A stretch of DNA of 64,000 nt from Eutreptiella sp. 'Long Island Sound 2002'. Taxonomy: Eukaryota > Protista > Euglenida. Location: assembly GCA_964036045.1 (NCBI GenBank), contig OZ038378.1, positions 13,826,001 to 13,890,000 on the forward strand, read 5' to 3'. Within the stretch, counting starts at the first letter, position 1. Every line of letters starts with the position of its first letter. The position numbers and the translations under genes were made by a program. The notes beneath the pieces were generated by a model that was not told where the DNA came from, did no database searches, and saw only the letters and a program-made list of their open reading frames with translations. Below, piece by piece: positions 10,319 to 58,446 of the stretch.

Positions 10319-11353
10319 TGGATGTGTGGTCAGACAATCCTGCCTCCCCGACGCCCTGGCTCCAGGGCCCACTTACCCTCAGCCCGAGCACAGAACCATC
10401 AGAGCGGTCTGGCCTATGGCACCAGGGCACAGTCCGCTAGCACCGCCACTGGCAAAATGCCGGAGCAGGGCGCCACTGATGTGCAACAGTCAATGATCAG
10501 GAACTGTGTTACATTCCCCCACATTATTTGTGGTGGAGAGCACCCTTCAAACTTCACGGTTAGAGAATACCAGTTGTAAAATGCAGTGTAGGTATACCAC
10601 CCGATAGTCCCAGTGCACCTTGTCCGGACCCTTTATTCGCTCTTTTGTGCCTCACTGTCCGCCGTGCCCACTCTGCACATGCTTTCCAAAATTAGGTGGG
10701 AGTTCATTTTGGACACTACAAATTCCTGAGTAACCGGACACTTGTCAAAACTGGCTATGTCAGCCTTGCCATCTGGGGGTCCCATCTCAGGAGACCAAAA
10801 ACGAACGAATCAAGAAGGCTACATAACCCCTACCGTCACATGGTTCTGCAGAGGGGAAGAATGAAAAAGGTGACTGAACGCAAACTGTCTCAATTTGGCA
10901 ATTCCATATTTCCGAATCAGACACGGGCCATGTATTTTCCTTGGAAGCTGCTGGGGATTCTGCACCATCAAGAAGTGGTGAAGTTCGGCCACAAAACATC
11001 GGATTTGCAGAAGGCCCCTCCTGTTTCTTTCCGCAAGATTGATGTATCCATAGCAGAGAAGATTTATGAGGTGGTGGAAAAGACGGGATTCCGGTGATAG
11101 GATTGCCAACGCATTTGAAACGTCCATGAAGGGATTGCCTCCAGTTCCAGTGAGCACCTAGTGCACAGAGCCTGACAGCAATGTGCCTCGAGGTGACCTG
11201 TTCCTCAATCTTTCCGTGGAAAGCTTCGGTCGGTCTCAAGGAGGTACCATCGTTTGTGGAGGCCGCCACAAAAAACCAGGCTCACGACCTACACCCAGTA
11301 CCACATATGCGCGCACGGTAACACACATCTTGTCTGTAGTTAATGGAGCCATT

Positions 11354-11752
11354 ATGCAGCTTCCCCTTGAAATGTGGAGAACCATTCTGCTGCACCTCAC
11401 GAACACCGATGCATGGCGCCTGTGCATTTGCAGCAGATATATGCTACAGCACTCACCGGATCTGATACGCGCGCCAACCGATCCCTGCCTGAGGTTAGAA
11501 CAGTTTGAACCACTGTACTGGAAGTTATCTAAGGTTAACACGTCCCTTTGGCCTCCCTGTTACGAAGTCGACTCCAGCTCCTCCGATAGCGACACGGATG
11601 GTACACAGGGAGCACCCCTGCCGGAGCTACCTGAAAATCTTACCATGCAAGGGATCCTGCAAGCGGATGCGGCCACCATACAGTCATGGCTGCCGATTCT
11701 TCAAGCCAGAAGTGTCTGGCTGTCACAGCGCCAACTTCAACTTACAGACTAG
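11354..11752 (+). CDS. F-box-like ORF/exon (132 aa), antisense inside the Hv-like intron
   Basis: MQLPLEMWRTILLHLTNTDAWRLCICSR fits the F-box consensus LPxExWxxIxxxLxxxDxxxLxxxC; pyrimidine-rich TAG acceptor at 11338-11339. Confidence 0.5.
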   Translation: MQLPLEMWRTILLHLTNTDAWRLCICSRYMLQHSPDLIRAPTDPCLRLEQFEPLYWKLSKVNTSLWPPCYEVDSSSSDSDTDGTQGAPLPELPENLTMQGILQADAATIQSWLPILQARSVWLSQRQLQLTD

Positions 11753-21348: not shown

Positions 21349-21359
21349 TTTCTCTCCAG
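21349..21359 (+). promoter_or_regulatory. Pyrimidine tract plus CAG acceptor a few nt upstream of the S1P ATG (5' UTR intron or SL trans-splice acceptor)
   Basis: gtttctctccag|ggccATG. Confidence 0.5.
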
Positions 21360-21363
21360 GGCC

Positions 21364-21502
21364 ATGCGAGGCCTCATAGCCTTCTTGCATTTTGGCACAT
21401 GGCTGTGGTGTGCCCCAACGTCTGTGGCCCAGTCTGTCACCCCAGTGCCCAACGAGTACATTGTCATGTTCTCTCAGTTCTGGCTGCCCCATGAACATGA
21501 AG
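21364..21502 (+). CDS. MBTPS1: S1P exon 1: signal peptide and prodomain start (MRGLIAFLHFGTWLWCAPTSVAQSVTPVPNEYIVMFSQFWLPHEHE)
   Basis: ATG at 21364, hydrophobic leader, EYIVxF prodomain motif, phase-1 GT donor at 21503. Confidence 0.8.
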
Positions 21503-21945
21503 GTGTTGCCTGAAACGCTGTGCGTGTTGCAGGGTCCCAACTGGGGGTATTTCTCTGCTCCGCGCCTCGCCCAAAGTTGTCCTGACCCCCCCCCTTTTCC
21601 ACCTGCGTAAGTGTGGCGAAGCCATGACCTCTGTTTTCGGACCCCTTCCCCCCCAAAATCCAAAATGGGCAAGTTTCAATACCGGCTTTTCGCTCGTGTG
21701 GCAGAACAGCAGGTATTCCAGCTACGGCCACAGTACCCGGCAGTGCTGAAGTGTATGACGAAGTGCTTGAAGACTGACCAAAGAAACCGATGGTTCACAC
21801 GAGGTCATCCCCTTGCTGAAGCCAAAGTCTCCAACATTAATGATCAGCAATCAGACGTTATTACGTTCTTGTTGATCAATGAACACCTGATTTTCCCGAG
21901 CAATCCCCAAAGAGCGCCTTCCGTATGCCTGATTCTGCTGAGATT

Positions 21946-22019
21946 GGAGGTGAGTGTTCCGGCGTATCTGCGGGCCTCGTTGCAACGAGGCGCGCAGATC
22001 CGCCCGAACACTCACCTCC
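21946..22019. repeat. 74-bp near-perfect palindrome (37-bp arms, 3 mismatches, no loop) in S1P intron 1
   Basis: ggaggtgagtgttccggcgtatctgcgggcctcgttg|caacgaggcgcgcagatccgcccgaacactcacctcc. Confidence 0.95.
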
Positions 22020-23733
22020 TGTCTGACATTGTACACACTGTCGGCATGTGATAGACGCAAAGTGACAACATTTGGGAAGGGGCCCCCGTTCCCCCAAAAA
22101 TGGGATGTCATTTATCTGGGCACACGGGCATGTCTCTCGAGCGAGGAAGGCGCATAGGGGCGGTGGGGGGGTTGGCGCATTTTTGTGGGTTTGGCGCACA
22201 GGGGTTTGGCACAAACGAGGCGCACGGACGGGGGTTTGGCGCAGGAGGCGCAAGGGCGGGGGGGGGGTTGGCGCAGACGAGGGGCATGGTGGAGTTGGGT
22301 GTGGCGCGCACAAGGCGCGCGTATCCAGGTGTGCCTCGTGTAACGAGGCGTGCAGTTTCGCGAAACACTCCGGAAGGGTCGTGAATCCTGTCATGATGTC
22401 GCTGATGCTGTCGAGCGCGTAGGCCCACACCCACCTGCAGAAGGCCACGCACAGCAATGTGCAGTCAGGCGTGGTCGCGGTGGGTGGCCGCGGGACGGGC
22501 ATGGCTCACACGGAAAACGGGGGGCAATGATTGCCCTGTGCCCAAGACACGGGAACCACCCACCCCTCTTGGCACACAACCTCGGGGGCGGGGGGAGAAG
22601 CACGCGCACGGAAAGCATTTGATCGCGCCACTCACAACCTGCAGGAAGCACCTTCGTGTGCCACATCAACATCTTCTCCCAGAAGCCGGCCGGTCAATCA
22701 TACTGAATGCAATACTCAAGGATGTCCTGAAGGGGGAGGGGTGCCAAGTGGTTCGGCATATCTCGTCCCCATGCAGCCCGAAGGACAGATTTGCCAAAAC
22801 CTGTGAAATGGGACAAAAATCCAGAATCTCAAAAAATGGCCAAAGTGGCAAGCAGCGTGCATTCGGTTCCCACTGACGGGAGCGCCGCCGGAGGCCTGGG
22901 AGCATATCATGTTCCAGGGGTACGAGTGCTCGCGTCATTGAATGTGATCCGTGGCTTTGGTGGTACGCGACCTGACCACAGCTGTTGTAAGGTGTAATGA
23001 CCCGCCCTAGACCCCAGGACAAGACCTACACATGACAGGCGGACCCAACAACACACACCGCCAAAAAAAGAAGCAACCCATACCCACAGCCACCAACACC
23101 GGCCCCAACACCAACTGAGGAACTCCCCCACCAACAAATGAAGTAAACTCGGAGCCCCCCTCAGCGGCGGAACTGGTGGTTTGGGTTCGGCGGGTCTTCC
23201 AAATCCGTTGGAGGAGCGTGAGTCCGCCGGGGGCACGCGGGCGAACGTTTGGCACGCCCATGCCCAGGGCTTCCCCGAACTTTGCTGTCGGCCGTCGCAA
23301 CGGACATGCACAATCTGTTGTCGAACAGTCGGCACGAAGTGGCGTCCTCATACGCCCGTGGCGGTGGCATGGGCCGTATTGACATGGGTGTCGTGTTTGT
23401 TGCTCAGGCGATGGGAGGTTGGACGGCGTGGGAGGGGCGACGCCAGACTTGGGCACGTGGACTTTGTTGGGCTACCGGCGGTGCAGCGTGAGGCTGGTCT
23501 ACGCTGGTGCACAGACCGCCTCCCGTTCGGAGCGTTCTTCGATTGGGGCTGCCCGTTCACCCGCGTGCACACTCGTCCCTTCCCTCAGGGCCCCAAGAGA
23601 GACGCCCGTGGCATCCTCTCGGCCACTCTCCTTTTGCCGGGTTCGGCACTCCTTCCCCTGCCCCCTCTTTCGCCTCCACCTCAATCGAACGCAAGCAGCG
23701 GCCCCACCGCCGATAACTTCCTGTGCTCTTCAG

Positions 23734-23803
23734 GTCTGATACGAGACGCCGTACGCGAAAGAGAGCCGTGCCAATACTCTTTGAAGGAGCGACCTTCGGC
23801 CAC
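23734..23803 (+). CDS. MBTPS1: S1P exon 2 (GLIRDAVREREPCQYSLKERPSA)
   Basis: ttcag acceptor, gtacgc donor; phase 1 to 2 bridges exons 1 and 3 exactly; length fits the S1P prodomain gap. Confidence 0.65.
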
Positions 23804-25034
23804 GTACGCTGTGCTTTCGCCCTTCAGTTGCACGCGTCAACAGCACGGGCCCAATGGTCTGTGGGACGGACAGTGCCTTGCATCCCCGCGTTTGGGGATA
23901 CGGCACAGCGGATGGGGCGTGTGCCCGCAGCTTCTCGGAGTTGCCTCTGGTTGTGCAGGGCACGGGGACAGCAGCCGCACTTACATTGAGCAGGCTGATC
24001 GGATGCACTCCCTGTGGGCGTAGGAACCTGGCTCGGGGCCGGGGACTTGGGTGGGGGGCTACTTCACGAATCCTCGACCTTCACTTACCCACCTCAACGG
24101 ATCCACTCGCAGCCCCTGCCCTGCACGCCCCCTCGCTCCCAACTCCCACACCCACCACCGACACCCACAATCCCGCCCCAGTACACCCGTGCCGACGCCG
24201 TTTAGTATGCACTGCAGGGGGCAGAAGGTGCCGGGCAATCTGCACCAAACATGGACAATTGGACCTGATGTGACCATCTTCTGGGGTAAATAGACCCACA
24301 GGAACACGCGGAACGCCGTTGGCTCAGTGTGTAGGGGAGGATATGTGTACTGCGGCGTCTGCCGGGCAGGGGCACCAGAACGGAGCTGTGCACGTGGGCA
24401 GTAGCTGAGAGCTATGTGTCAGCAGCAGCGGGAGTGGTGTATGTGTGCAGCAGCACGGGCCTGTGCGCAGTTCACTCCACGGGCCTACATGTAGTCAGTG
24501 ATGGAGACAACCGGTGCACGTATGAAGGATTGGGGTAGAGCTGGAGGGTTTGGGGTGATTCACAGAGGAGATAGCTCTCTTTCCTGGGGACAGACAGACA
24601 GGCAAACAGATAGACAGAGAGACAGACGGACCGACAGACGGGCATGGGTATGGGTGTAGGTATGGGTATGTTTGGCTGCCGCACAGGGCTATGGGGCTGC
24701 ATCGAGGCCACACATGCACCCCATAGCCCACGTCAGCCAGCGGAGCTGCAGCTAAAAGGGCTGACCTTGGCAGCCAGCCCCTTGGGAAAGGGGGGCGGCA
24801 CAAAAGCTGGGGGACGAGCACCCGCCGGCACACAAAGCCTCAGACTGCAGGGAGAATCACCAGCCACTTGGTGAGCGATGGCAGTGCCTGGGCCAGTGCC
24901 GAAAGACAATCCCAGAAAATTCGCGATTGTCCCATGACACTGTCCAGGGTAGACCACTGAGGGAACGGACTGAAGCAGCCACGGAAGGCATCCGCAATGC
25001 GCACACCTGTGGGCACGGGAGGAGCACAGGGGGT

Positions 25035-25114
25035 GTCGAAGCCGAGCGTCAGAGTGGTCACTGCCTTCGACGACGTCGAAGCCGAGCGTCAGAGTGGTCA
25101 CTGCCTTCGACGAC
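25035..25114. repeat. Two perfect 40-bp tandem copies, each with GTCGAAG/CTTCGAC inverted ends
   Basis: gtcgaagccgagcgtcagagtggtcactgccttcgacgac x2. Confidence 0.9.
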
Positions 25115-25181
25115 GTCCGCGTCTTCTGTCCACACGCCATTTGGGCTCAGAGGAAATTCAAACCGTCTCTCATGACCACAG

Positions 25182-25337
25182 GTTTCACGAACAAAAGACT
25201 GACTTCGCGCTCTTGGCCGTTCCGGAGCATTGTGCCGATGCGTTGGTCCGCGCGTTGCGCGGAAGCCCCTCGATCAAGGCCGTGTGGCCTCAACGGCAAC
25301 TTCAACTGCCCCCGCGCCCCGAAATGCAGGAGCCCGG
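25182..25337 (+). CDS. MBTPS1: S1P exon 3: prodomain (FHEQKTDFALLAVPEHCADALVRALRGSPSIKAVWPQRQLQLPPRPEMQEP)
   Basis: Aligns to S1P SDFEVIQI...HPNIKRVTPQRKVF; cacag acceptor and gtatgc donor. Confidence 0.85.
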
Positions 25338-25700
25338 GTATGCCTTGTGCACCCCCCCCGTCCTGTGTGCCTCGTGGGCCAGTGTTGGTGGGTGTGTGTT
25401 CGGGGGCCGGGGGGGGGGGGGTCGCACTGTGTCCTGTCGTGGCGGTGCAGAGTGTTAAATTCCCAGACACGCTGTGAATTGCTTTAACAGCTTGTCTGGG
25501 AATTTAACACAGAGGCTGCAGGGGTCGGTGACCTGGGGCACGCGGGACGGTCGTCTTGGGCGCTTCACGGCCCATGGACATGGGCCGTGTGTGAGAGGAA
25601 CGTGATGTGACGTGACGTGATCAAAAGCGTCGGTGTCAGCACGTGTTATTGCGGGGGGCATCCGCACCAGGCCTTTGCTTAGTGGCTGGTTGATACTATA

Positions 25701-25887
25701 CCCGGGGGGTGGGTGGGTGGGTGGGTGGGTCAGAGGCCAAAAAAAAGTTTGTGTACCTAAAATCGACCTCCAAGTTCGGGCCCCTTTGATAAATTTCATT
25801 TTTTTCCTGAGGAAAAATTTTCTGATGTGGGTGGGTGAGTGGGTCAGCCAAAATCCCGGGGGGCCAATTTGACCCCCCCCCCCCCAG
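25701..25887. mobile_element. TA-flanked MITE about 120 bp upstream of the sulfatase ATG
   Basis: TA|cccgggggg ... cccccccag|TA, imperfect G/C-run termini. Confidence 0.5.
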
Positions 25888-25983
25888 TATCAAGCAAAGG
25901 CCTGATCCGCACCATCCGCGACAGCGAGGCCGCACTGCCCCCTCGTCGGTGCCGGAAGGGCAGTGTGCTCTCCATCGCCGGCA

Positions 25984-25995
25984 GCTTTCGCACAG
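25984..25995 (+). promoter_or_regulatory. Acceptor-like site 12 nt upstream of the sulfatase ATG (candidate SL trans-splice or 5' UTR acceptor)
   Basis: gctttcgcacag|agcctatctcacATG. Confidence 0.4.
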
Positions 25996-26007
25996 AGCCT
26001 ATCTCAC

Positions 26008-26426
26008 ATGCCGCTGCGCCATGACGCCCCGCGGCCCTGCCTCTTCGGCCTCCTGGCGCTGCTGCTCGCCGCTCTTGTCGGCGCCCATGAGAGGCCCAAC
26101 GTCGTTCTGGTGATGGCGGACGACTTCGGATGGGGCGACCTCGGGGCATTCAACGCCCAGAGCCACTCCGGCGAGACCGTCCCCCCCGTCACCCCGAATC
26201 TGGACCGGCTGGTGCGCGAGGGCACCAGCTTCACCCACTTCCGCACCACAAACCCCGTGTGCTCCCCCTCCCGGGCCTCGTGGATGACGTCCCGCTTCCC
26301 CTCGGCGGAGGGCGTGCAGGCCCCGTTCATTTATCAGTGCACGAGGCAGGCCAATGCACAACTCGGAGTGGCGGACTGGCTGAACCTCTCCACGCCCGTC
26401 CTGACTCGCGAGCTGCGCAGCGCCGG
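26008..26426 (+). CDS. Sulfatase exon 1: signal peptide, PNVVLVMADDFGWGDLG, TPNLDRL, catalytic CSPSR
   Basis: CxPxR formylglycine motif (VCSPSRASWMT), metal-binding DD; gtatct donor, phase 2. Confidence 0.93.
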
Positions 26427-27554
26427 GTATCTGCTCCTTTCCCCCCCTGAAGACGGCCTGTAGCACGGCCCATGCGCTTGCCGCGCGCCTTCGTCGCCCG
26501 TGCACGTGCGGTCATGTGTTGTGTGCCCCTTGTTGGCCTGGGCCGGAGGGCGTCCGTGGAATGCAGTGCTCCGTTGCATGTGCACGTGCCCCGATGATCG
26601 CACCCCTTCCCCCTCATGCTCTTGCACATGCCTGACTACTTGTGGCGTGCAGAGTCCTCTGGGCGACGGGCTTGGCAAAGCCGGCCTCCGGTGAGCGAGG
26701 CCTGTCAGGGGGGTTGGGGGGTTGGGGGGTAAACCAACATCTCTGAGTCAAAAGGGTTAGGGTTACCCTCACAACGCGCCGATCATTTCGTGCACATGGG
26801 GAATTTGCCTTCCCCGACATTGCCTCTTCGGGCTGCGATTTCAAGCGGGTTTTCTGAGTCAATAGTGCCTCCGGTTACGGGAGCACGGGCAGAAAGTACG
26901 CTCGAACCCCCGCCCTCCCCCCCCTTCTCGCTTGCATTGCTCGGTGCTTGCTCAGGACCCCCAATGGCGACCTCGCTTGGGGGTCCCACAAACAGTGTCA
27001 TGCCGGTTGCAGGGCATCGTGCCATACGCACGCCTCGGTACGAGGCGCGCAGGGCATGGGATGGGGTTGGATGGACTCCCTTGAGGCGACAGATCTCGGT
27101 TAGGGGCTATGTCCTCCAGGAGCGGCGCCGCCATTCATGAAATCACCCACGCAGCACAACCCGCCAAGGCCATGGGTAGTGGGTGTACCACAAGCGTGCG
27201 ACAATACCAAGGCGAAGCTCAGCTCTTGCCAGGTAGACAAGGTCGTCTTTTATTGGCAGCAATCACCGCCAGCACGATACAGTGCAACTCAGTACGCATG
27301 CGCTTCAAAGGAGGTCGAAGGATTCGAAGGGCACACGCAGGAGTTGCGATCTCGCACACTGCATGTCATGCACACACCATCATCCGTGGCATGCACACCC
27401 TTTCACTTGCCCCAGTCGTTTGACCGACGCTTTTACAAACGTCCCACTTCTTTTGTTCATCTCTTGCCTTGCACACCCCCTCCGTATTGGGGCATATGCC
27501 TGCAGTACCCCGCAGTACCCTCACGCGCACTTTGTCCCCGACTTCGTTCGGCAG

Positions 27555-27987
27555 GTACCACACGGGCCATTTTGGCAAGTGGCACTTGGGCTGCACACCC
27601 GACGCGCCCTCCCCTGCCGCTTATGGCATCGACGCCTCCGTGACGTACGCCTCCAACCCTCGCAACTCCGCGCAGTTGGGGTCGTTCACTGACCCGTGGC
27701 TGCCTGCCAACAGCTCCCGGCTGATCGTGGATCACGCTGTCGACTTCCTGCAGCGCATCCCCACCGATGACCCCTTCTACCTCAACGTGTGGTTCCACGC
27801 GTCGCATGCGCCCATGAACCCGACCCACGCGCAGCTGCAGCAGTTCCCGGCCTCGCAGTACTGCGCCTGGTCCGGATTCAGCCCGGATTTGTTCTCCACG
27901 TTCTTCCCCTACTGCCCCAAGCAGATCCTGCGGGCCACTCAGTACGACCTGGACCAGCAAGTGGGGCGGCTCTTGGACTATTTGGAG
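27555..27987 (+). CDS. Sulfatase exon 2 (GYHTGHFGKWHLG...PFYLNVWFHASHAP...DLDQQVGRLLDYLE)
   Basis: GKWHLG and xHxP motifs; ggcag/gtggtg. Confidence 0.93.
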
Positions 27988-28333
27988 GTGGTGCACACCC
28001 AGTCTTGCACTGCAATTGTCATCGTTTGTGGACAAAGGAAAGTTGAGCGGAGTGCCTCCGGAGATCTCTAAGTGTTTTTGGGATATCACACGGGTCTGGC
28101 GTCGGAGCACCGAGGACACGAGAGTCTGATGGGGCATAGTGCGGCCTTCAGCGCGTGGGGCACCGTCCCGACCGCGTATGGGGACCGAAGAGGGGCGTGT
28201 GGTTTGGACACTAATCCTTCGTTTGCGTGGATTCGCCCCCCGGACTCTCAGTCCGACCCCCGGCCCAAATCCCCTCAGGCCTCCCCCCCCGGCCCATGGC
28301 AGCTCCAAGCAGACCTCTGACCCCCCTTCTCAG

Positions 28334-28748
28334 GTCTCGGGCCGCGCATCCAACACTTTGGTGGCTTTCGCTGCGGACAACGGCCCCGAAGACCCCGCCA
28401 TGTACCTCCACAGCGTTGGCAACCCCGGGCCGTTCCGCGGCCGCAAGCGGAGCCTGTACGAGGGCGGCATCCGCGTGCCTTTTGTTGTCCGGTGGCCGGG
28501 GGTCATCCCCGCGAACCGGCGCTCGACGGCGCCCCTCAGCCCAGTCGACTGGATGCCGACCGTGGCCCGCCTCGTGGGGCTGCGCCTTGCGCCCGCGGCC
28601 AAGTCCCTCATGAGCGGTGAGGACAACGCGGCGTTGCTACAGGGGCACGTGCACGCCGCCGCACCGCGCCGCATGCCTTTGATGTGGGACTATCGCTTCG
28701 GACAGATTGGGTCCTGTGTTAACGAGAGCCCCCGCGTGGCGATCCTGG
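28334..28748 (+). CDS. Sulfatase exon 3 (NTLVAFAADNGPE...GRKRSLYEGGIRVPFVVRWPG...SPRVAIL)
   Basis: DNG, GxKxSLYEGGIRVP motifs; ctcag/gtattg. Confidence 0.93.
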
Positions 28749-29096
28749 GTATTGCCCCCCCACCCGCTGTGACCAGCAGAGGGGCGCGTCAACCGAAGGG
28801 CTGGGGATGGCTCTGAGACGGTTCTCGGGGCCGCCCCCTCCGGAACCATAGCACAAGAGGGAGGAGGACGGGACAGCCACTACACACCACAAGCCACTGA
28901 CTGTCACTGCCTGACACACACCGCGAGGCAGGGCACTCTGCATTTGCAAGTCAGGGCACCTCGGTCCCGGTGGGAGTGGAAATGGGTGCGGGTTGTGGTC
29001 CTCGCCGTATCGCTGCATGGCAGCAGGTCTGGGGGTTTCAGGTGCTTCGGCGCCCGACGACGAATTGCCATCTGCCACCCAATGATCACGCACAGT

Positions 29097-29773
29097 TCAG
29101 GTCAGCAGACGGCCCCGCCGCAGCGATGCTGGTGAACGAGTGGGAGAACAGCAACAGCGGCACAAACGACACGAGACCCGAGCCGCGCTGCAAATCAACG
29201 AGCAGACGAAACCATTATCAGTTGGTGGGGCTACAATGTCAGCATGATAACAAAGGGGCACTTTCGCGCCACTCAAAGCAGGGCGACAAGGTTTCAAACG
29301 ATCAATACTATATACACGAGGGCCCTGCGGTGTGTCCACCAGATAACGATTTCCCCCTCCCATTTTAGAACTTCAAATCGACCCTGCCAAACCCGCTTCA
29401 GCTTGTCAAAATTTCTTTGTTCCGCCTTCGGCAGATCCCTCAACCAAACTCTATCACCCTCTTCAAAGCTCAGCGAAGAAATGGAGGATGAAAATCGCTT
29501 GGCCACAGCCGCATGCAGTGACTCCAGCTTATTTTTCACGCGCTGACGCTCATCTGCCAGGCGCGAAAAAAAATCCAGGGCGTCCTCACTGCCCTCCTCT
29601 GAAACATACGGAGGGCAGTCCCCAAACCCAGGGGGGTCCCTCCCAAACACCAGGCGGTGTGGGGAATAAGGGGCCACAATCCCGGGGAGATCGTTCAGGC
29701 CCCACACGGTCACAGGCAGTGCATGATACCAATCACCCTTCCGCTGACACAAGTACTTACGTAGGGCCATCAT
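29097..29773 (-). mobile_element. Gypsy-type LTR retrotransposon integrase C-terminal remnant inside sulfatase intron 3
   Basis: GDWYHALPVTVWGLNDLPG...YSPHRLVFGRDP...FEEGDRVWLR...KLKRVWQGRFEV, frameshifted to NRYLVDTPQGPRVYSIDRLKP (GPY/F module). Confidence 0.9.
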
Positions 29774-30688
29774 GACCCCCTATACAGCAGACTCCGCCCT
29801 GCCATTTCCACAACAAGTTCATCATGCCCATTGGCGGACGGATGTTTTCAGGGTCCATTATGGGCCCTGGAATGGGACTGGGCCATACGCCCGTGTTGTG
29901 GTGCGTTGTAGTGGCGTTGTTGTGCATTGGGGGGGCGCCTCCCACACATGCGACGATCCTTGACCTGCTGGAGGAGCTGCGCTGGGGGAGGCGTTGGGGT
30001 ATGTGACCGACCCTGTGAGAACGCTTTTCCTGTGGCGCCTGCAGCACGCCCTGCGGCGGGCAGTCTGGGAAACTTGCCTAATTGTGGAATTGCAGTTTCT
30101 ACATTGCTGACCAACAAAACGAAGCCCATGTGAGTTGTATTGAAGTTCTTGTTGCTCATTTTTCTTTTTGTTTTTCCCTTTTACAAAATACTCCATTGCC
30201 AGCACAGTGCCCAAACCCAAATCCGCGTGTGGCCAAACCTGAACCTCACGAAATGCAGTCTCCGCAGAGCGGTGGGAGTAGGCACTTGGGAAAGTATTTG
30301 CTGCAAAGCGACGGGGGTAGGCATTGTGTTGGTGGGTGCAATTAATGAGAACAGCATGACTAGGCTGCCACTAACACTGACACACAACCATGGTACAACC
30401 AAGTACTTTGCCATTGTGTGACATGTTGTTGCTTGAGCCAAGGGGTACGGGGAAAGAAGTAGCACCGAGGCCCTGCCCGAGGGGTTACTACCCCTCCTCC
30501 TTAACCACAGGACAAGGACGACATTCCCATCCACACTTCTGCCTAGTCTTCGCAGTGATCGAGCGATAGTGTCAAAAGATCACCGTGCACCATTCCTTAT
30601 CAGTCATCAGGCTTGTTTCCTCAACAGTCTGCAATAAAATAGGTTTCTGTGACCCTGCGGCGCAGAAAGCGTTCTTTGTGCCACTCAG

Positions 30689-30990
30689 ACCCTGCGAACC
30701 CCGACCTCAAGCTGCTTTGCAATGCGGACGGCTCCAGAGCCGAGCTGTACAACGTCACGGCGGATGTGTTCGAGACCAACAATTTGGCGGCGGCGATGCC
30801 CGAGACCGTGGCCACGCTGTCGAGGACTGTCATCACGTGGGCCCTGGCGCAGCCGCAGTCGCCGCCTGAGAGCGTGCAGATCGGGCCTGGCTGCGGGCTG
30901 CACATCGCGAGAGAAGGCTATCGCCCCGTGACTGTGGAATTCACGGACACGCTGCCCGAGTTCCTGCATCGCAGCGGAGGCCCGCAATGA
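30689..30990 (+). CDS. Sulfatase exon 4 (DPANPDLKLLCNADGSRAELYNVTADVFETNNLA...HRSGGPQ*)
   Basis: KLL...ELYxxxxDxxExxNLA C-terminal sulfatase motif; ctcag acceptor, TGA stop. Confidence 0.9.
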
Positions 30991-32217
30991 GGGCGGGGGC
31001 GCGGTGCACCAGACCCTCGGACAGATCTGCAGGGAGGCGCTTCTGCCTGCCCTCTGCTTTCTGGTGATGGTGGGCCAGGTGACGGCTACCCAGGAGCAGG
31101 GGCTGGGAGGGACAGGGCTTGAATTGCACGGGGTGGGGAAGGGACGCAGGGTGGTGTGGTGAGGGTTGGGGGGCACGGGGTATCAGCGGTGATCAGAAAG
31201 ACAATTCCGCAAATCGGCTGGAACATCTGGCGTCAAACACACCGCGCTATCACAGAGGCAAAGGAATGTATGACTACAGAGTGAGGAAGCGAGTCCGCAG
31301 CCATCGACCACGGTGTCTACTGCCAACAAGCTTCATATGCCGTCATTCTCAGTGAAGCGTGCTCTCCAAGAACCATAACACAGCACTAGGGGGTCGGTTC
31401 ACCATCATGAGTGGTGACCTTCATTTCCAAGGCATGCCGCCCTTAGCGCATTCTCGGGGAGGGGGGGCTCCCCGGCGTAAACCGGCCATTTTCTCCATTT
31501 TCATCCTTGCCACTTTCGACTCGCCTCAAGGTCTCTCATGGCCCGAGGAAACTATGCTGCCGCATGCCTTCGGTGATATTCACAGTCATGCACCTCCAAG
31601 TACACCAGGAATTGATCTCGAGGCTCCCGAGCGGTGCCCAAAGGCAAAACGGGGTCAGCCGCTGGATGCTGGAGTGACGCCCGTACCGCTGCGTTGTACA
31701 TTATTCTCGCTGTTGTTCGTTTTCCAGGTCAAATGCCCCTAGAAATGCCGGGGGGGCAGTGCCCACTGGAACATCGGTGTATTGGACCCAATTCCTCAAA
31801 GTGTGACCAATGCTGCAGCACAAATGGCCGTGCCCCCACCACGCCCACACCCCATCTACATGCGGTTTTGTTTGCAGGGGGGTGGCCCTCGTGAAGGGGT
31901 TTTGGGTTAAGAGTAGCGGCCCCGTTGGCATCAATGGTGTGGGGATGTTCGCACTCCCAGGGGCATTTGGTCCTCTTCAACCCACTTCCTTGGTGCAACA
32001 ATTGCTTCTGCAAGACACGCCCTCACCCCTACTTGTGCTCTGAAGACACACCCTCGCTTTGTGGCTTGAGGAACAATGCCTCCATGGTCATCCCCTTGTA
32101 TTGGACTGTGGTATTCAACCCTCCACTCTGGTCGGCATTTCTGGCTGCCGTCACGCAATTTATTGAGTCCACACCGGACACCTGCAGACAGGGCTCGTCG
32201 TGCACTATGGACCGCCT

Positions 32218-32322
32218 ATGAAACGTGATGAAACGCTCATTAAACGCCAGGAAACGCCCACGAAACGCTATGAAATGCGAATGAAACGCTATGGAACGCC
32301 CATTGAACGCTACGTAACGCTT
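32218..32322. repeat. Degenerate ~11-bp GAAACGC repeat cluster
   Basis: Repeated (t)gaaacgc motifs. Confidence 0.7.
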
Positions 32323-35300
32323 GTGCCTGGAATGAAATTTCATGCCCAGCTCTTTTAGCTTGTGGCTCTGCATCACAGTCCTCACAGTCTCAAAGCAACT
32401 CGGCGATTTGGGCCCTTGGGGTCCTGCAGCAGTTGAAGGAGTGCGTGTTCACCAAAAAAAGGACCCCAACCGCCCGGGCCACTTTTGCTGTGACTTGGGA
32501 GTTCCGTACAAATGTGCTGCAGACAACTCACATCCTCTGCCGCCCAGGAGGCTCCTGGCCTGAGCATACACGGGGCGGTATGATCACAGGGCTGATCACA
32601 GGGCATCGGGGACTTGGCGCTCAGAGGGACACGAAAGCAGCAGGCTCTACAGCCAACCAGCCCCCCGTCGCCCTTCCCGGGGGCCACAGGGCACGTAATG
32701 CCGATGACGGAGGAGAGGAATGCACTGCGGCCACACGGCACAACAGCGAGCACCTGTGCAGTTTGTTGTACCCCAAACAGACAGAAGACCGCAAACTGGT
32801 TCGGATCACCCTCTGATCTGATTGGGGGCAAAGGGGTGCATTGCGATTCCGAAGCTTTGATAACTCTCACGGGCACGCGGCGTGATGACCAAGCGGACTT
32901 CGCCGAAGATGATCCCCCAGACGACGACGTGTCCACCTCACCCTTCTGTGTCCAGCGGTCGCATTGTCCAACGATCACTTGGTGATCGCACCGCATTTTT
33001 TCGCTACCGAGTTCAATACGTCCTGTCTTTTGGGGAACAAGAGCCAGGCTTTAGGGTTGCAGAAATGAGGGCTAGTGTGCCATATCCTTGCACTGATGAG
33101 TGTGCAAAGGGTTGTCCTGGGTGTTATGCAACGACATAGGCAACACCAAGAAATCCCTCAAGCCGGGAGAGCATGTCCAGCTCTTTAGGATGAAGACGGA
33201 CCGCAAAAAGGGCCTCTACTCTGAGAAGTGCCAATTTGAAGCCTCTGGATCATGTTGTGCTTTGCATGGGCTGGGTGTGTTGTGCTCAGGGTGGTGTTAT
33301 GGGTCGAGGTATGTTGCCCACATGTTCACACGCAACAATCGTTGTGCCCAATGATAACTGTGTCCAACGATCATTAGGGGATTTTATTTTTTTTTGAGGT
33401 CTTTGGTGGTCGCTGGACATCGGGCGCGGGTACCCATGTCGACGCCCGGACTGGCTGGCGTCCAAGCCAGCCCTCAGCCATTTTGTTCTGTGGACAATGG
33501 CAATGAGGATGGCAGGACTGAGTTGGGGCCCCTCGCTCAACCCCCAGTGATTTTGTTGCCTGTGTCGGTCAGTGCCGGTGAGGCGGCGCCCTTGAGGGTC
33601 GTCACTATTGGGCGACCCCCCTCACCCGGGACAAAGACCAAAGTCAATGTGCAACATCGGTGGCGCTGGTAAAGAGGCACACTTCACACCATTCTAGCGC
33701 CAAGCTTAGGTATGTGTGTTTGGGGCGGAGCGGGCCCAGATGTGGGGATTTTGGGGTCACCTTCACAAAGACATGACTCGCCACGGCTACTACAGAAGGC
33801 CTTCAGGACAAATAAATTCACAGTACCACAGTTCTTCGTCGCTCTCTAGCAGATGGACGAGCCAATTCATCCGCAGGACCGAGTCGCCTAGCATCAATAC
33901 CACTTGATGTTCGGTAGCCCCAGCCTATGATAGTTGAAAAGTATTGATTCTTGGGCTCAAATACCAAAAAATGATGCTGTTTGGTGGAAAAACACCAGAA
34001 TCACGTATCTCCCCCCTTGCGGCACCGCCATGCGTCGTCCCCAATCCATCTTATTTTTGGAGAGAGGGACTGTTGTGCCCCACCTTGGGCACCAGGATCG
34101 AATCTGAAATCGATCCCAGATTTTGAGAGAAAATGAATTTTCAACATTTTTTGGCCAAACATTGAGAAATGCGGAACACCGTGTTGGGGCAGATCTTACC
34201 GCGGTCACAGGAGCAAGAGGACGATGCCAAACGACATAAGGAACCCCAAACTGCCAATGAATTGGACAGCATTCTGCTGGTTTTGTGCAACTAGCGTCTT
34301 TAGTCAGGCAATGCATTAAGAGGGAAAGTTAGTGCACGGGTGCACACTGGCCATCTGCTCAGGCCCAAACGCTCCTGTCTAGCGCTATACCAAGTGTTAT
34401 CCAAGAATTCGTGACCTGATACACCAGGAGCCAATGAACCACGTTGCTTTTCTTGACTTTGGAGTCCCCGATACGGAAGGGTCCATGCCGTATTACTCTC
34501 TGCTGGCAGGATACCCTTGCAGACACATGGTACCTCCCAAGACATTATGCCCCCGTTGAAGGCCTGCCCAAACTGCAGCTGCTCACCATTGGACACCGGA
34601 GCGCCTGTATTACCGTGCCATTCTCGGCCCACTTGGGAATTGAACTGGGGCCTGTTGATAAGCAGCTCTGCTGCATAACCACTAACACACGCACCAGTGA
34701 GCTGCAGACCTGCACCCTAATGCCTGGACTGGTCAGGGATAGGGGGTATCCGGCCCCGATAACCCCTACCCTAGGGCTTCTTCGACTTGAAGGATGCGTC
34801 ACATCAGACAGCATTGGCACCAAAGGCACCAAGGCAAGTGTGCCTGCGGTCACTTCACTGTGACTTGCAGATGATTGAGATGTGGAGCCAGAATCGGTAC
34901 ACTGAAGCACTCCAATTCAGCCAGACCACTTCCCCACCATCCGGGAACAAACAGTGTGCACAATTTCTTCTGGCATTCTTACATAGCCGTAATGGCTACA
35001 CCTTCCAGAACAGTGGCATTGCATTGGCTGAAAAATGCAATTTGCCCAGACTGTAGTCCATCCACAAGGTGCTACTCAAACCAGCCAAGGGAGATATGAA
35101 AGAAGACGCTTGGGCTTACTTTTGTGCCAAATGGTCGCTGCTTGCTCCAATTGTGACCGGAGGAATCAATGCTGTCCAACCAGATTGGCTGCCAACCAGT
35201 GTCGACTTTTTTTTGTTGGATTTTTGCAGTTCAGGAACACCAGTAGGTCACTCAACTTGGAAAATGGGGACACCAGTGTTTTCAGTGGTGAACAGAGCCC

Positions 35301-36288
35301 TTTTTGAGACTTGTGCAGCACAGTCCAGCATTCAACACCTCACGGAACATTGCAAGTCACGGGGTAGCTTGGCCAGTCACTCAGATTACTTTCATGAAGG
35401 GACGAGACTTGTGACAGCACAAAGCACACGCCTCATCCCAACCATCATCCCAACCATCTGCCTCATCCCAACCATCATATTGGCAGCTGTCCCATGGTTG
35501 CACCCCATCGTAGATAACGGGGGGAAACAGACCTGCCTCCGGAAACAAATTTGGAGACTCCAAACAGGCCATGGCCACCAGTTGTGTGAGAAATGCTCTT
35601 GACAACAGAATTACTATTGGCAACGTCCCTATGGGGTGTGCTTGCCTGGCACGCTGCTTTGGGGCAGTTGTCCGGGACTCTAGACCTCGATTTCCCATCT
35701 CCTGGAGACACCCCAAAGCACACCAAGAAATGGGCATCCTACCAGCCAAATCAACTCAAAGCCCATCCCTACAGAGCACACACACAAATGCAAGTATTTC
35801 ACGTTCAAATTGCAGCCATGACTGTGACCTTGTGACCATGTGACCTTTATTGTTCATAGTAAACACTTCTGTCCCCACAAGTGGGTGGGTCAATACATTC
35901 TGCACATAAATTTCTTTACACTCACCACACATTCTGGCGGTGCACAGGGGCAGTCGTGTCCGATTCGGGATGTGCATTTGTCTGCAAGCCCCTTGCCCTG
36001 CACAAACAAGGCGAATAGTCTGAAGTGCAGTGCGAGCGGTGCGATACAGTGCAGTAGTGCAATACAGTGCAGTACGGTGCAGTGCGGTGCCGTCATCCCC
36101 TTTGCATGTAGATGCTCGTGACTGAAGATATGGCAAAGGGGACCGGACTGCACCTCAAACCCACAGCACTCCCCACGTGATGCACGACCTGCCCTTGCGT
36201 GGCGTAGCGGCGCTCCTGTGTGTGTGTGGATTTGCAACTCCTCGAATACCTCAAGTGTCCCATCCGCCCTCCCGCATTTCTGCGTCAG

Positions 36289-36353
36289 GGATACTGAAGA
36301 CCAAGTCGACTCATGTGGGAACAGCACCGCGTGGCGCTTGTGGGAATCTGCGG
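36289..36353 (+). CDS. MBTPS1: S1P exon 4 (GDTEDQVDSCGNSTAWRLWESA)
   Basis: gtcag acceptor, gtttgc donor; phase 2 to 1 links exon 3 to exon 5; weak sequence conservation. Confidence 0.6.
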
Positions 36354-38473
36354 GTTTGCCATCATTTCCTTCCCAGCCCCGGCCCGAGCCCCAGGCCTGG
36401 CCCCTCCCGGTGCGATTCCTGTTTACCGGAGGTCCCCAAAGCGCGGATGCCGTGTCGATTGGTGCCGGCACGAGGGGTGCCGCAGGGGTCCCTACGCAGG
36501 CGAAGCTGAACCTGCCATTGGTTTGTGGCATTGTAACAGAGTCGGTGATGGTGCAGAACATCCACTCAAACAAGGGGATGTGGGTAGCTGCTTGCGAGCT
36601 CTCGTCGCTGACCTCTCGTCATACCTGTTGACAGCAGATCTGAGAAGGCATACGGTTCTGGTGCTGGTTTGCCTGCCTTGGTTGACCTGCAAGACCACGG
36701 TTGATGCAGGACAGAGAGGGCTGAAAGCGCAGGGTGGATCGGGTGCTGTGCAATACTGGACTCTTTTGAACCAGCACAACATGCAGCAACAGGCAGGGCC
36801 ACAGCCTACGGCCTCGACAGTGCACTGTGTTATATGCTCCGATGCAGCTTGTCCAAGCTCCACAAGGCGTGTGGGGCTGGATGAATTCCGTGCCTTGCTA
36901 CAGCTGCGACAGTTTGTCCGTCAGTGTTGACCACCATAAAGACATTATCTGCGTGGACAGCACGTCACTACTCCCCCCCGCATCATGGCATCAGTCAGGG
37001 GGTGTGTGAGTACCCCCCTTGCCATCCCCCATCCGGCGGGTGGCAACCCCCCCAACCCCACCCGCCGCCGCCCTGCTTTGGACTTTGCTCTTACAACCGC
37101 TGCGGAGGTGATGTGTGCCTTCGAGGTCTCAAATCGAAAAATTCCAGAAGGATGGTTCATTTGCCGTGAGGCTATGCCACGCGAATACCCCCGACAAGTG
37201 GAGGGTATGCAGCATTTTCCCATACCTCACCCCCAAAGGTATCCAAAAACCCTTTTCTTGTGGGCTCGCACCGTCGCCTGAGTGACTGCTGGGCAAAGGG
37301 GGTTGGGGCGGAGGATAGGCATGTCCTGCGGGCAGGCTATTCAAGGGGCTTTAAAACAGTTTGGATGGAGCGTGCGTTGTAGGCGGCGGTGAAGCTGCTC
37401 CCGCCTCTCTGCCCTGCGCGACGAAGAGGCCAAGAGGATATAGCAAGTCGCTAACAACCGCAGTGACACCGCACAAACAAACCGAACCTCCCCTAAGTGT
37501 TTGTTGCCGTTCATTTGACGCTCCCCGGCCCTCTGGGGGACGACGTGGGGTGGGAGCTGACAAGGAGGGGCGCTGGGGGGGGGGGGGTAATGCTGTTGCA
37601 ACCTGTGACCCCACTGAATCCCCGGCACAGCCTCGTCAAAACCCTTGCATGGTGCTTTTGATGGGTAGCGTCTGAGGCCGGAGGCAGAAGAACAAGTAGC
37701 GAGCGGTGTAGAGAAGGACAGAAAGAGACGGGTATCCCGTGCTTCAAAACGACATTGTTTTTGCGCGTGACCCACGGGCATGTGGTACTTGGGTATGTGA
37801 GGGCCATTCCTGTGGAAGGGCCCCAGCATGTGCAGGAGTTCAAGACTCTCGATGACTGAAAGAGGAAGTTCCACACTGCCCCTGTCACACACTCGGCCCA
37901 GCAGGCCTTGCAGTGCGTGGCACGATTTTGCGGCCTTATCTCTGTGCTTTGGACGGTCCTGGGCAGCCTCACAAAACACCCATCGACATCGGTGTCCAGC
38001 CCTCCCGTCGCCCCTTGGAAGGGGGGGTGCACAACTGGTGGGGGGGCGGGGGGGGGGCTGTATCCGTCCACTGTGTCTGACCGGAGGTGCTGTGGTCAAG
38101 AATGCACGTGTCCCGTTCTTTCAAGTCAAGTACGCCTGGGCCCAGCGATGAGCAGAGGTGATGTCTGGGGCCGACACAATGACGAAGACGAAAAGGCATC
38201 GGGAACTAACTCCGTTTGATGACCCCCCCGACCTGCCCCACACCTGCCGCTCCGCCCGTCGTTTTTTTTTTTTGAAGCGTCCCACTGGCCACTCTCTCCC
38301 ACAACCCTCTCGTCTTCTGCCCCCCTTCGAGCGCATCTCTGAGGACAGCCGTCGGTGACGTGTATCCCGTGCCCCACCGGATGTCCTGTGGTTCCGTGTT
38401 GCTGGTCCACAAACCTCTTGTGCTCCGGTCGGGTCTGCACACACCCCCACCCCCCCTCTTCCCCTCGGCGCAG

Positions 38474-38568
38474 GAGCCAGAACCCTCAAGACCACCCCTT
38501 TGGATGTGGTCACGGCACTGAACGCGAGGAACGTCTGGTCCCGGGGGACAAAGGGCAAAAACGTGAAG
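38474..38568 (+). CDS. MBTPS1: S1P exon 5 (GARTLKTTPLDVVTALNARNVWSRGTKGKNVK)
   Basis: Matches S1P [31 protein letters not shown]; cgcag/gtgtgt boundaries. Confidence 0.85.
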
Positions 38569-39171
38569 GTGTGTCGTGAAGCTCATGCGAAGGGCACGGG
38601 CCATCCTCTCGTAGCGGCTTGAAAGGGGCGGAGAATGCCCATCGCCAGGGGCCCGGCGTTCCCGGACTACGCGCAGGAGCCCCCCCCCCCCCGGGGGGCA
38701 GTGCACCGCTGATGGATACCACTTGGGGGTCTAGACTCACGGCACACTGCACTTTGGAAAAGGCCTCTCGCCGGTCGTTGCCCTGCCACCCCCCCCCCCC
38801 CCCCACACACACCACTGGCCCCAACAAATGCCCTCAACAAACAAAAGGAGGTTCTACAAAAGACATAGCACTGTACTTGCCGGTACCTGACCAGCCTTCA
38901 TCGAGCAGCCCTCGCACTGTGCCAAGGGGGCGGGGGCGTATGTGCGAGAAACCGTACGCCTTGTGGCTGGTCGGAGCCGATCAGTGAGAAGAGGGTGGGC
39001 AGATACGCATTTCAAAGCTGCCGACAAGCCATTTGACTGATTAATCACACAACAGCAGATTGCCGCCGTCGCTACCAAGCAAAGACTTGAGCGCCTCGGA
39101 GGGATAGGACGAGGGACGGAGGGAGTGCGCACTCCGACCCTCGCCCCAATGGGAGCTTTTGCTGTCTGCAG

Positions 39172-39256
39172 GTGGCAGTCTTCGACACCGGAATCAAACA
39201 AGATCATTCCCATTTCAAGGGCAAAGTCGTTGTAAAGACATGTGCCAGTTATACAG
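39172..39256 (+). CDS. MBTPS1: S1P exon 6 with catalytic Asp (VAVFDTGIKQDHSHFKGKVVVKTCASYT)
   Basis: VAVFDTG motif, tgcag acceptor; the 3' end is inferred from a GC donor (G|GCGTGC) that gives the required phase 1. Confidence 0.8.
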
Positions 39257-40373: not shown

Positions 40374-40504
40374 ATGCGAAGACGTGTGAGGATGGGTTTG
40401 GGCATGGGACGTTTGTGGCCGGCGTGATTGCATCGGCGGAGGACTGTTTGGGCATTGTCCCGGACGCGGAGCTGTATATTTATAAAGTGTTCACTGACAA
40501 GCAG
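40374..40504 (+). CDS. MBTPS1: S1P exon 7 with catalytic His ([44 protein letters not shown])
   Basis: [12 protein letters not shown] motif, ctcag/gtcctc boundaries. Confidence 0.95.
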
Positions 40505-41549
40505 GTCCTCCCCACGCCCCCCTGGCGACGGTCCTGCATACACCTACACTTGACTCAAGCCCCATACATCAGCGCGCGACCGGACTTCCTCATGCAAGCC
40601 ACGCTCTGCTGATGCTGCCTCGTCACTTGCTGTCCTCGTGGCCCTTCCCAGGCCTCGTGGAGACTGGGATCCCCATAGAAGCATCATGAAGGAGGGTACG
40701 CGGAGCGTGAGCTGTAGTGGGGGGGGGAAAGGAGCAAGTCGTCTATAATCCCTACATTATATGCCCCTCCCGGGGGAGAACAGGAGGGCAGATCGGGGCG
40801 CCTTAGCTGGCCCCTGTGATCTAACATACCAGAGCCCCCTAACCCTCCCCTCGCAAGAGCGGCCAGGACATTAAAAGTCCCCAACCCTACATTATATGCC
40901 CGTGCATGTGCGCGCACACACATGCACGCACACACACACACACACGTGCGCGCGCGCGACATGCGTCAGTGCCACATTTCACCTGCCCCCCACTCCGCGG
41001 CTGACCGTCACACGGGGGGTCCAGTGCCGAAACACAGTGCAGATGTATGACCGCCCTCCTGACCCGGCCTTGCTGGTCCACTGGCTTGCCACTCGCGTTC
41101 ACATTTCACTTGCCCCCCCTCCCCCGGTCTCTGCCTCCCCACACTGCAGCCCCCCACGCTCACAACGCGGAACTCCTGCCGCCCCACACTAATGTGCCAC
41201 AGCACACCTGTGATATCTAGAAGCCGCTGATAAGAAACACACAAGCCCAGAGAATAGGCCATCCGCTGTCAACAACGAGCGCATGCAGCAATGATGACCA
41301 AGTACAACTGGCATCGTCCCAGAGCTCCCATTCGCTGAGGTCCAGCATACCACGGAACTTGCTCAGTCAGTAAACTCACCTAGACTGATTGCCTCCATAC
41401 TACCGTGCGCAATGCTCCCTGCAGCCCCCGGCTCCGGGAGCCTCGAATCGTTTCCTACTGAGACCAATCCCCCCTCTTTCTGTCAGGGTGCCCCCGGCAA
41501 AAACTAGGAGCTTGCTGAGCAACGGTCCGTTCCTATCCCCCCACTTTGC

Positions 41550-43145: not shown

Positions 43146-43262
43146 GTGTCTTATACCTCCTGGTTCTTGGACGCCTTCAATCATGCCATCTTGGACGAGG
43201 TTGATGTGCTGAACCTCTCCATTGGGGGCCCTGATTTCCTGGACAAGCCTTTCGTCAACAAG
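43146..43262 (+). CDS. MBTPS1: S1P exon 8 ([39 protein letters not shown])
   Basis: Near-identical to the S1P signature segment; tgcag/gtattg. Confidence 0.95.
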
Positions 43263-46693: not shown

Positions 46694-46799
46694 GTGTGGG
46701 AGGCGTCTGCCTCGGGCGTCGTGATTGTGTCCGCTATTGGCAACGATGGCCCGCTCTACGGGACGCTGAACAATCCTGCGGACATGATGGATGTCATCG
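46694..46799 (+). CDS. MBTPS1: S1P exon 9 with oxyanion Asn ([35 protein letters not shown])
   Basis: [18 protein letters not shown]; tgcag/gtgtgt. Confidence 0.95.
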
Positions 46800-49530: not shown

Positions 49531-49672
49531 GGGTGGGAGCCATGACGCAGGCTCAACAAATCGCACGTTTCTCATCGCGGGGCATGACCACTTGGGAGTT
49601 ACCTTGGGGCTACGGCCGCTTCAAGCCGGACTTCGTGACCTTTGGTGAGGCTGTGAGGGGCAGTAGCCACAG
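49531..49672 (+). CDS. MBTPS1: S1P exon 10 ([47 protein letters not shown])
   Basis: [21 protein letters not shown]; ctcag/gtgtcc. Confidence 0.95.
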
Positions 49673-50746: not shown

Positions 50747-50946
50747 GGGAGGATGCAAGAGTCTCTCGGGGACCAGCGTGGCCTCTCCGGTGGCGGCGGG
50801 TGCAACTGCTCTGCTCGTGGCGTTGGCCAAGCAGCACTCCAGGGCCCACAATCCCGCGGCCCTCAAGCAAGTCCTCACTGCCTCGGCGAAGCCCCTGCAT
50901 CGCGTGGGCGTGTTCGAGCAGGGAGCCGGTGTTATGAATTTGGAAG
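50747..50946 (+). CDS. MBTPS1: S1P exon 11 with catalytic Ser (GGCKSLSGTSVASPVAAG...FEQGAGVMNLE)
   Basis: SGTSVASP, NPAALKQ, EQGAG; ctcag/gtgtgt. Confidence 0.95.
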
Positions 50947-52223: not shown

Positions 52224-52350
52224 AGGCTGCGAAGCTCATGGTGGAGTATGTGCCACAAGTCACTTTCTTGCCGCGGAGTCTGAATCTCGTGGACGAAGGC
52301 ATGTGGCCATTCTCTACGCAGCCCCTGTACTGCAGTGCGCAGCCACTCAA
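52224..52350 (+). CDS. MBTPS1: S1P exon 12 (EAAKLMVEYVPQVTFLPRSLNLVDEGMWPFSTQPLYCSAQPL)
   Basis: Matches S1P YKPQASLSP...YMWPYCSQPIY; gtcag/gtattg. Confidence 0.9.
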
Positions 52351-58304: not shown

Positions 58305-58446
58305 GAGTCCCTGATGCCGAGGACGGCGTTGAATACGAAGGCCATGACATCGGCCAAGGGGACGCAGCGAATATAGACGAGTGTCATAAGATGTGCCGCC
58401 GGATGCCGCACAGTACTCACTGGACGTTTTCGAAGTATTACGCGCG
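58305..58446 (+). CDS. PAN/Apple-like domain exon A, probably part of S1P (GVPDAEDGVEYEGHDIGQGDAANIDECHKMCRRMPHSTHWTFSKYYAR)
   Basis: GVxYxGxDI...ECxxxC...WTF pattern of PAN_4/Apple domains; ctcag/gtgtgt, phase 1 to 2. Confidence 0.8.

Follow-up and report, generated by a model that had tools for sequence, protein, structure and literature searches.

We analysed a window of 64,000 nucleotides (nt) from the euglenid Eutreptiella sp. 'Long Island Sound 2002' (assembly GCA_964036045.1, contig OZ038378.1, positions 13,826,001 to 13,890,000 of the forward strand), in which a complete sulfatase gene lies inside an intron of a gene for site-1 protease (S1P). The coding sequence of the sulfatase is wholly contained within the S1P intron, both genes are read from the + strand, and the two form a real nested-gene pair. 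The reading we favour, to which we give a probability of about 0.6, is that an intact, single-copy, four-exon sulfatase gene sits in sense orientation inside one S1P intron of ~11-13 kb, that it is expressed from an mRNA of its own, and that the host transcript is spliced over the guest.

The nested sulfatase gene

The sulfatase occupies positions 26008-30990 of the window, between an S1P exon that ends at ~25337 and the resumption of the S1P chain at 36289 (a candidate exon) or 38474 (a secure one). Its first exon (26008-26426, +) opens with the ATG, encodes the signal peptide, the DDFG metal site and the CSPSR formylglycine motif, and ends in phase 2 at the donor GG/GTATCT. The second exon (27555-27987, +) runs from YHTGHFGKWHLG through SHAP to LLDYLE, the third (28334-28748, +) extends from NTLVAFAADNGPE to RGRKRSLYEGGIRVP and ends in phase 1 at the donor G/GTATTG, and the fourth (30689-30990, +) carries the stop codon (30988-30990). 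The first three exons match the Pfam family PF00884 with 57.5, 30.3 and 50.6 bits, respectively, all above the gathering threshold (cut-off 25 bits), and these three + strand open reading frames (ORFs) cover profile positions 1-88, 92-228 and 227-300 in order. Exon 1 also matches 3ed4 (E 8e-15) and exon 3 PDB sulfatases (E 1e-14) in phmmer searches, exon 4 matches a C-terminal sulfatase segment (E 0.004), and all four pieces are colinear on type-I sulfatases of solved structure (residues ~3-100, 106-290, 253-400 and 392-439; phmmer, PDB). The gene models were used in searches one exon at a time, and joined models were only translated locally for their frames and for a local hidden Markov model (HMM) score.

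The exon borders were set by frame and by splice-site reading at the boundaries. The resulting introns of 1128, 346 and 1940 nt are GT..AG throughout, with C/T-rich tracts followed by CAG, and the junction LRSAG/YHTGHFGKWHLG restores a block conserved across the family. Local translation of the four exons gives a coding sequence of 1569 nt, or 522 amino acids, with a single, terminal stop, a hydrophobic N-terminal signal (CLFGLLALLLAALVGA) and the motif residues DDFG at 38, CSPSR at 85, GKWH at 147, SHAP at 223 and DNG at 299. The 522-residue model thus has the formylglycine motif C-x-P-x-R together with the metal and catalytic residues of type-I sulfatases, and the guest is an intact type-I formylglycine sulfatase gene. 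An earlier reading of this DNA, made from the sequence only, had proposed a full four-exon sulfatase at 26008-30990 on the strand of the host, with its own signal peptide and stop, and the Pfam matches, the PDB matches and the splice frames bear this out.

The sulfatase is single copy in the genome, where its nearest paralog is ~40% identical, and of the DNA of the locus nothing recurs elsewhere in the genome but short repeats and a dispersed repeat of 600 bp in intron 3. It has the family-defining domain and catalytic residues of the type-I formylglycine sulfatases (PF00884; GALNS- or arylsulfatase-like), but it differs in that its top matches are metagenomic or from bacterial metagenome-assembled genomes (MAGs) rather than paralogs of its own genome: exon 3 (28334-28748) matches metagenome contigs and bacterial MAGs best, with 50-55% identity, versus ~40% for the own-genome paralogs. 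Since exon 3 is closer to these bacterial-type sequences than to the paralogs, its affinities suggest that the sulfatase may be an old horizontal acquisition that gained spliceosomal introns later. An ortholog was not found with an alignment query in which an intron-less paralog and the four exons formed the rows; identity to the exons was at most ~48% among the 120 matches listed, and relatives of the intron-less paralog dominated the result. With the exon-3 ORF as sole query, nothing was returned except this genome's own ORF and fragments of bacterial type at 50-55% identity. The named MAGs that match exon 3 include members of Planctomycetota and Verrucomicrobiota, and several of the matching proteins are annotated as N-acetylgalactosamine-6-sulfatase.

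The S1P host gene and the age of its intron

The host gene shares its catalytic residues and S1P-specific domains with the S1P/MBTPS1 family (S8 subtilase, MBTP1_N prodomain, MBTPS1 third and fourth domains), and it differs from this family in carrying a PAN/Apple insertion, as does Euglena longa. Two relatives recovered in a whole-library HMMER search served as tblastn queries: a metagenomic protein (P0002) and a transcript-derived protein of Euglena longa (P0004, EukProt EP00668), the latter being the best full-length relative of the gene. With these queries, 20 colinear S1P segments of 42-87% identity are found between 25.2 and 71.7 kb in the window and a 10-kb extension of it, so that the gene runs past the window to ~71.7 kb.

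Upstream of the sulfatase, S1P exon 1 (~21364-21502, +) has its ATG at 21364 and encodes a signal peptide and the first prodomain strand (NEYIVMF...PHEHE), with a donor G/GTGTTG at 21502/21503 or one at 21504/21505. The prodomain exon (25182-25337, +; FHEQKTDFALLAV...IKAVWPQRQL...), with its acceptor at 25181 (alternative 25150), ends in phase 2 at the donor GG/GTATGC (25337/25338). It matches P0002 (E 2.5e-8), P0004 (E 6.5e-4) and a paralog on contig C9 of the same genome (E 2.6e-4) by tblastn, and MBTP1_N scores 17.4 bits over it, under the Pfam cut-off of 27. Prodomain exons had been proposed across 21364-25337; the one at 25182-25337 stands on these matches, and exon 1 has a weak match only (E 0.016, tblastn with P0002).

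Downstream of the sulfatase, the secure part of the chain begins with the exon in which the mature protease starts and which has the RTLK motif (38474-38568, +; ARTLKTTPLDVV...KNVK, preceded by ...CCCCTCGGCGCAG). Positions 38470-38571 match the S1P relatives with E 1.9e-8 and the C9 paralog with E 1.2e-4 (tblastn), and the exon has a solved junction. It is followed on the + strand by the exon of the catalytic Asp (39172-39256; VAVFDTG), placed by tblastn and a junction solution, and by that of the catalytic His (40374-40504; GHGTFVAG; Peptidase_S8 25 bits; tblastn E 6e-17; junction likewise solved). Further + strand exons, placed by colinearity with E. longa and by their junctions, lie at 43146-43262, 46694-46799 (oxyanion Asn), 49531-49672, 50747-50948 (catalytic Ser, in SGTSVASP), 52226-52350, 55489-~55680, ~58261-58463 (PAN), 61000-61110 and 63464-63571. 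The Asp, His, Ser and oxyanion Asn are all intact, and the domain scores are 25 and 29.3 bits for Peptidase_S8 (cut-off 21.8), 66.7 bits for MBTPS1_3rd and 46.4 bits for MBTPS1_4th (cut-off 27). From the 38474 exon onward, 11 of 17 junctions tested solve cleanly as GT..AG and recover the E. longa sequence, and stops are absent from every homologous segment downstream of 38474. By these marks the host S1P gene looks intact from 38.5 kb on, with a length of at least 50 kb and at least 20 exons. The PAN/Apple-like insertion (PAN_4 at 58261-58463, 24.7 bits, just below the cut-off) is common to the window copy and the E. longa transcript, and is therefore a conserved euglenid feature and not a local splice artefact.

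The S1P exons that flank the sulfatase occur in the same order as in the N-terminus of the C9 paralog, which is encoded by one exon, and in the E. longa protein. No second signal peptide or prodomain was found between 31 and 38.4 kb in a tblastn comparison of the C9 paralog with the window, and a complete secretory S1P therefore needs exons from both sides of the sulfatase. The proposition that the host must splice over the guest exons thus holds structurally. The phase 2 end of the prodomain exon does not suit the 38474 exon, which requires phase 1, and because of this mismatch the sequence-only reading had inserted a candidate micro-exon of 65 nt (36289-36353, +); it has good splice signals, namely a C-rich acceptor and a GT donor, and would bridge the two phases. 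Many other in-frame solutions reach 38474, including direct joins from donors at 25381 (CCA/GTGTTG) and 25387. Depending on the solution, the host intron may measure ~10.95 kb (25338-36288) or ~13.1 kb (to 38473), with its donor at 25337 or slightly downstream.

Three S1P paralogs are present in the genome, namely the window copy, C9:53116777-53117688 and C14:34737815-34747124, and their intron content is very different. The C9 paralog carries the signal peptide, prodomain, Asp and His in a single open frame, that is, one exon, and aligns (tblastn) with window positions 21352-21522 (weakly), 25180-25320, 38470-38571, 39166-39252 and 40376-40507, a stretch in which six or more introns interrupt the window copy. 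We considered whether the MBTP1_N match on C9 might be a retrocopy or 'fossil cDNA' of the window gene; it is instead a paralog with an intron-poor 5' end. The intron at the host position is lacking in the C9 paralog and in P0002. The paralog on C14, where no sulfatase match was found, does have one at that point: there the prodomain is separated from the ARRLQS segment by ~8.4 kb of intron. This comparison of paralogs implies that the intron position predates the nest and that the nest is specific to the window copy of S1P. An intron after '...DKQV' is common to all three paralogs.

In the host intron and in other S1P introns, no further gene is marked by a Pfam domain above the cut-off. Sulfatase intron 3 contains a dispersed repeat fragment (29210-29806, -; at least 40 copies of 77-89% identity) with an integrase-like ORF (29294-29773, -) that has no Pfam match, and a near-perfect palindrome (25452-25510, unstranded; GTTAAATTCCCAGACA ... 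TGTCTGGGAATTTAAC) lies ~115 nt past the S1P donor, within the host intron. The sole other Pfam hint among the long ORFs scanned in the window is a weak, sub-cut-off F-box match in an ORF upstream of both genes, at 11162-11749 (+; 17.6 bits).

Expression of the pair and rival explanations

Under the favoured reading, the sulfatase would be made as its own mRNA. Its transcription would most likely begin past the host donor, spliced leader (SL) trans-splicing would supply the 5' end at a C-rich/CAG acceptor lying 13-130 nt before the ATG, and polyadenylation would follow shortly past 30990. Searches for promoters and terminators of bacterial type in the DNA past the sulfatase are uninformative for a eukaryote. 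S1P mRNA would come only from polymerases that read through the 3' end of the guest; the host donor at ~25337 would be paired with an acceptor at 36288 or 38473, host splicing would ignore four good guest acceptors, and the four guest exons would be discarded as intron.

The 3' 20-mer of the Euglena SL has 2956 + 3073 copies on the two strands of the genome, compared to one for the reversed 20-mer used as a control. Since the Euglena SL is present in thousands of copies, trans-splicing of the sulfatase transcript is plausible. The ~6000 copies are dispersed and far exceed the need of tandem SL-RNA genes alone. The window itself holds no SL copy, as expected for an unprocessed gene. In E. gracilis, the acceptor consensus of outrons is a C-rich tract followed by CAG (PMC11170887), and the window acceptors similarly have C-rich tracts and then CAG, with several donors that are GTGTG-like, as in that species (PMC11170887). 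Predicted SL acceptors lie at 25866-25995 (+), with one CAG at ~25878 behind a 12-C tract and another at 25993-25995, and there is no ATG between them and the sulfatase start at 26008. The SL acceptor proposed earlier at 25995 is only one of the candidates, and the CAG at ~25878 fits the consensus at least as well.

Several observations weigh against the favoured reading. The micro-exon 36289-36353 has no homology support and no PDB match, and it ranks 1527th of 2303 open, frame-compatible AG...GT/GC segments by similarity to the E. longa linker. Of the two points at which S1P had been said to resume, 38474 is thus upheld and 36289 is not; the host intron may end at either 36288 or 38473, and its exact borders are unproven. 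How exon 1 connects to the prodomain exon is ambiguous, as detailed below. The sequencing runs that match the locus are of DNA only, three tiny runs labelled 'RNA?' share no words with it, and all four runs compared with 25200-31199 are genomic contigs; no transcript-derived protein of the window sulfatase or S1P was found in the protein collections, nor did the E. longa protein as a query recover a closer euglenid S1P transcript. Short-read unitigs break at a repeat at 25.69-25.87 kb and leave the stretch from the host donor to the guest start unbridged. In C. elegans outron experiments, an acceptor with an upstream donor on the same RNA is cis-spliced and not trans-spliced. By the same logic, the upstream host donor would be expected to cis-splice to the guest acceptors, and co-transcription combined with trans-splicing is not obviously workable. 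This cis-over-trans rule favours a separate guest transcription start downstream of the host donor, which would be more likely than release of the guest from the host pre-mRNA.

Such release is the core of an 'intronic operon', in which one host transcript of RNA polymerase II would yield either the host mRNA by cis-splicing or the guest mRNA by SL addition and polyadenylation. We consider this arrangement improbable. If it were true, the choice between cis- and trans-splicing would set the ratio of two secretory enzymes, and sense nesting would be a recurrent, tolerated layout in this euglenid due to SL trans-splicing.

A mis-join in the assembly is unlikely, and one specific chimera, a false join of S1P 5' exons to the sulfatase at the repeat of 25.6-25.9 kb, seems to us highly improbable. 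Short-read unitigs do stop exactly at this very high-copy short repeat (25600-25900, unstranded; word depth ~44,000 and many loose ends, versus a depth of ~40 on either side), but it is only ~300 bp long, well below long-read length, and the S1P exons on either side are colinear and in the correct order for one gene. The same order is present in a contig, not a scaffold, of 1,018,734 nt (1.02 Mb) from ENA, which equals window positions 18201-38815 (20.6 kb) with zero mismatches and two indels in simple repeats. These indels are 2 nt in a TG microsatellite (19784) and 1 nt in a poly-C run (38805). At 25200-25691, 25873-29450 and 29639-30403, the Logan unitigs of three short-read runs show no differences from the window, in a comparison that covered 25200-31199 and is not fully independent, since the runs may share their sample with the assembly; the other break is the repeat in intron 3. 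A unitig of 8.4 kb matches from 30374 to the end of the compared stretch and by its own length would reach ~38.8 kb, which would link sulfatase exon 4 to the 38474 exon. The repeat at 25600-25900, just upstream of the sulfatase start, includes GGGT repeats, a core rich in A/T and a run of 12 C that ends in CAG.

Alternatively, the upstream S1P exons (21.3-25.3 kb) could be relics, the S1P gene having been cut off from its 5' end by the arrival of the sulfatase or by later decay. The window copy would then be a pseudogene or give only a product truncated at its N-terminus, the C9 and C14 paralogs would supply the secretory S1P, and there would be neither a functional host nor a splicing conflict. 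The ambiguity of the 5' link is the main support for this reading. Three in-frame solutions lead from exon 1 to the prodomain exon: a canonical join of 21502 to 25151; a GT-AG mini-intron of 28 nt followed by a possible exon 2 (21533-21606, +), a candidate only, which lies in another frame and has at its end a GC/GTAAGT donor that fits the 25182 acceptor in phase; and a reading of the 21533-21606 segment through a 1-nt frame change. Scored with an HMM of the prodomain made from homologs, these joined models differ little, at 51-60 bits. Exon 1 and the next homolog-like segment are in different frames, and the sole GT-AG rescue of that segment, at 28 nt, is shorter than the shortest GT-AG intron reported in E. 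gracilis (41 nt; PMC11170887). The weak homology of exon 1, the unsupported micro-exon, the existence of two more S1P paralogs and the E. longa transcript ORF, which begins just where the 25182 exon starts, point in the same direction. A fully canonical in-frame join (21502 to 25151) is nevertheless available, and the supposed frameshift in exon 1 lacks statistical support: the resemblance of the other-frame peptide at 21533-21606 to homologs is not above that of shuffles (z 0.48), and we rejected it. Moreover, the prodomain exon is open and significantly conserved, the downstream exons are all open, with intact Asp, His, Asn and Ser and 11 canonical junctions, and the ~8.4 kb intron at the same position in C14 marks a long intron as normal for this family. 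Together, these points make decay of the 5' exons unlikely. We also judge it quite unlikely that the guest is silent and intact by chance, or that its exons are used only in chimeric S1P-sulfatase transcripts. Such chimeras are possible on paper because the phases match: the S1P prodomain exon (25337) and sulfatase exon 1 (26426) have the same GG/GTAT donor in phase 2, and the phase 1 end of sulfatase exon 3 suits the 38474 exon, so that the joins 25337 to 27555 and 28748 to 38474 would be in frame. The missing transcript-derived sulfatase protein would fit either version, but it is weak evidence, since the transcriptome of this organism is apparently not in the protein collections, where no 100%-identical transcript-derived protein appeared even for other queried genes. 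An ORF of 1569 nt over four exons, with all catalytic motifs and a signal peptide and stop of its own, would be unexpected for decaying or exonised sequence, and this is the only copy of the sulfatase in the genome.

Comparison with known nested and polycistronic genes

If both genes are expressed, the pair is a natural test of how a cell that uses both cis-splicing and SL trans-splicing handles a same-strand intronic gene, because a single pre-mRNA could contain the host donor, four guest acceptors and the guest 3' end. For gene prediction the locus is a caution: euglenid genes can reach at least 50 kb, with introns of at least 10 kb and other genes inside them.

Same-strand nesting is already known and makes up a large minority of cases, and on present evidence the window pair is an ordinary nested gene of known arrangement. 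The claim that nested genes are usually antisense overstated what is only a mild bias, at least in human, where the passage of PMC3192792 that cites Yu et al. 2005 gives ~63% of nested genes on the opposite strand, ~37% on the same strand and 41% as single-exon. As with the intronic nested genes of animals, one intron encloses a whole protein-coding gene, the host would be transcribed through it and spliced over it, and transcriptional or RNA-processing interference is likewise to be expected. Unlike in the human pairs, the guest has three introns and lies in sense, in a lineage with SL trans-splicing and mostly post-transcriptional control (PMC6366073). The term 'nested gene' was not found among the Euglena papers that our search listed.

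The operons of C. elegans and the transcription units of kinetoplastids are polycistronic and are resolved by SL trans-splicing. With these systems (for context, PMC6366073 and PMC1657053) the window pair shares the same-strand order and a predicted SL acceptor upstream of the downstream ORF, and in principle one primary transcript could likewise yield two mRNAs. In contrast to a polycistron, however, the second gene of the pair lies inside an intron of the first and not past its 3' end, and release of the guest from a shared transcript would destroy the host mRNA.

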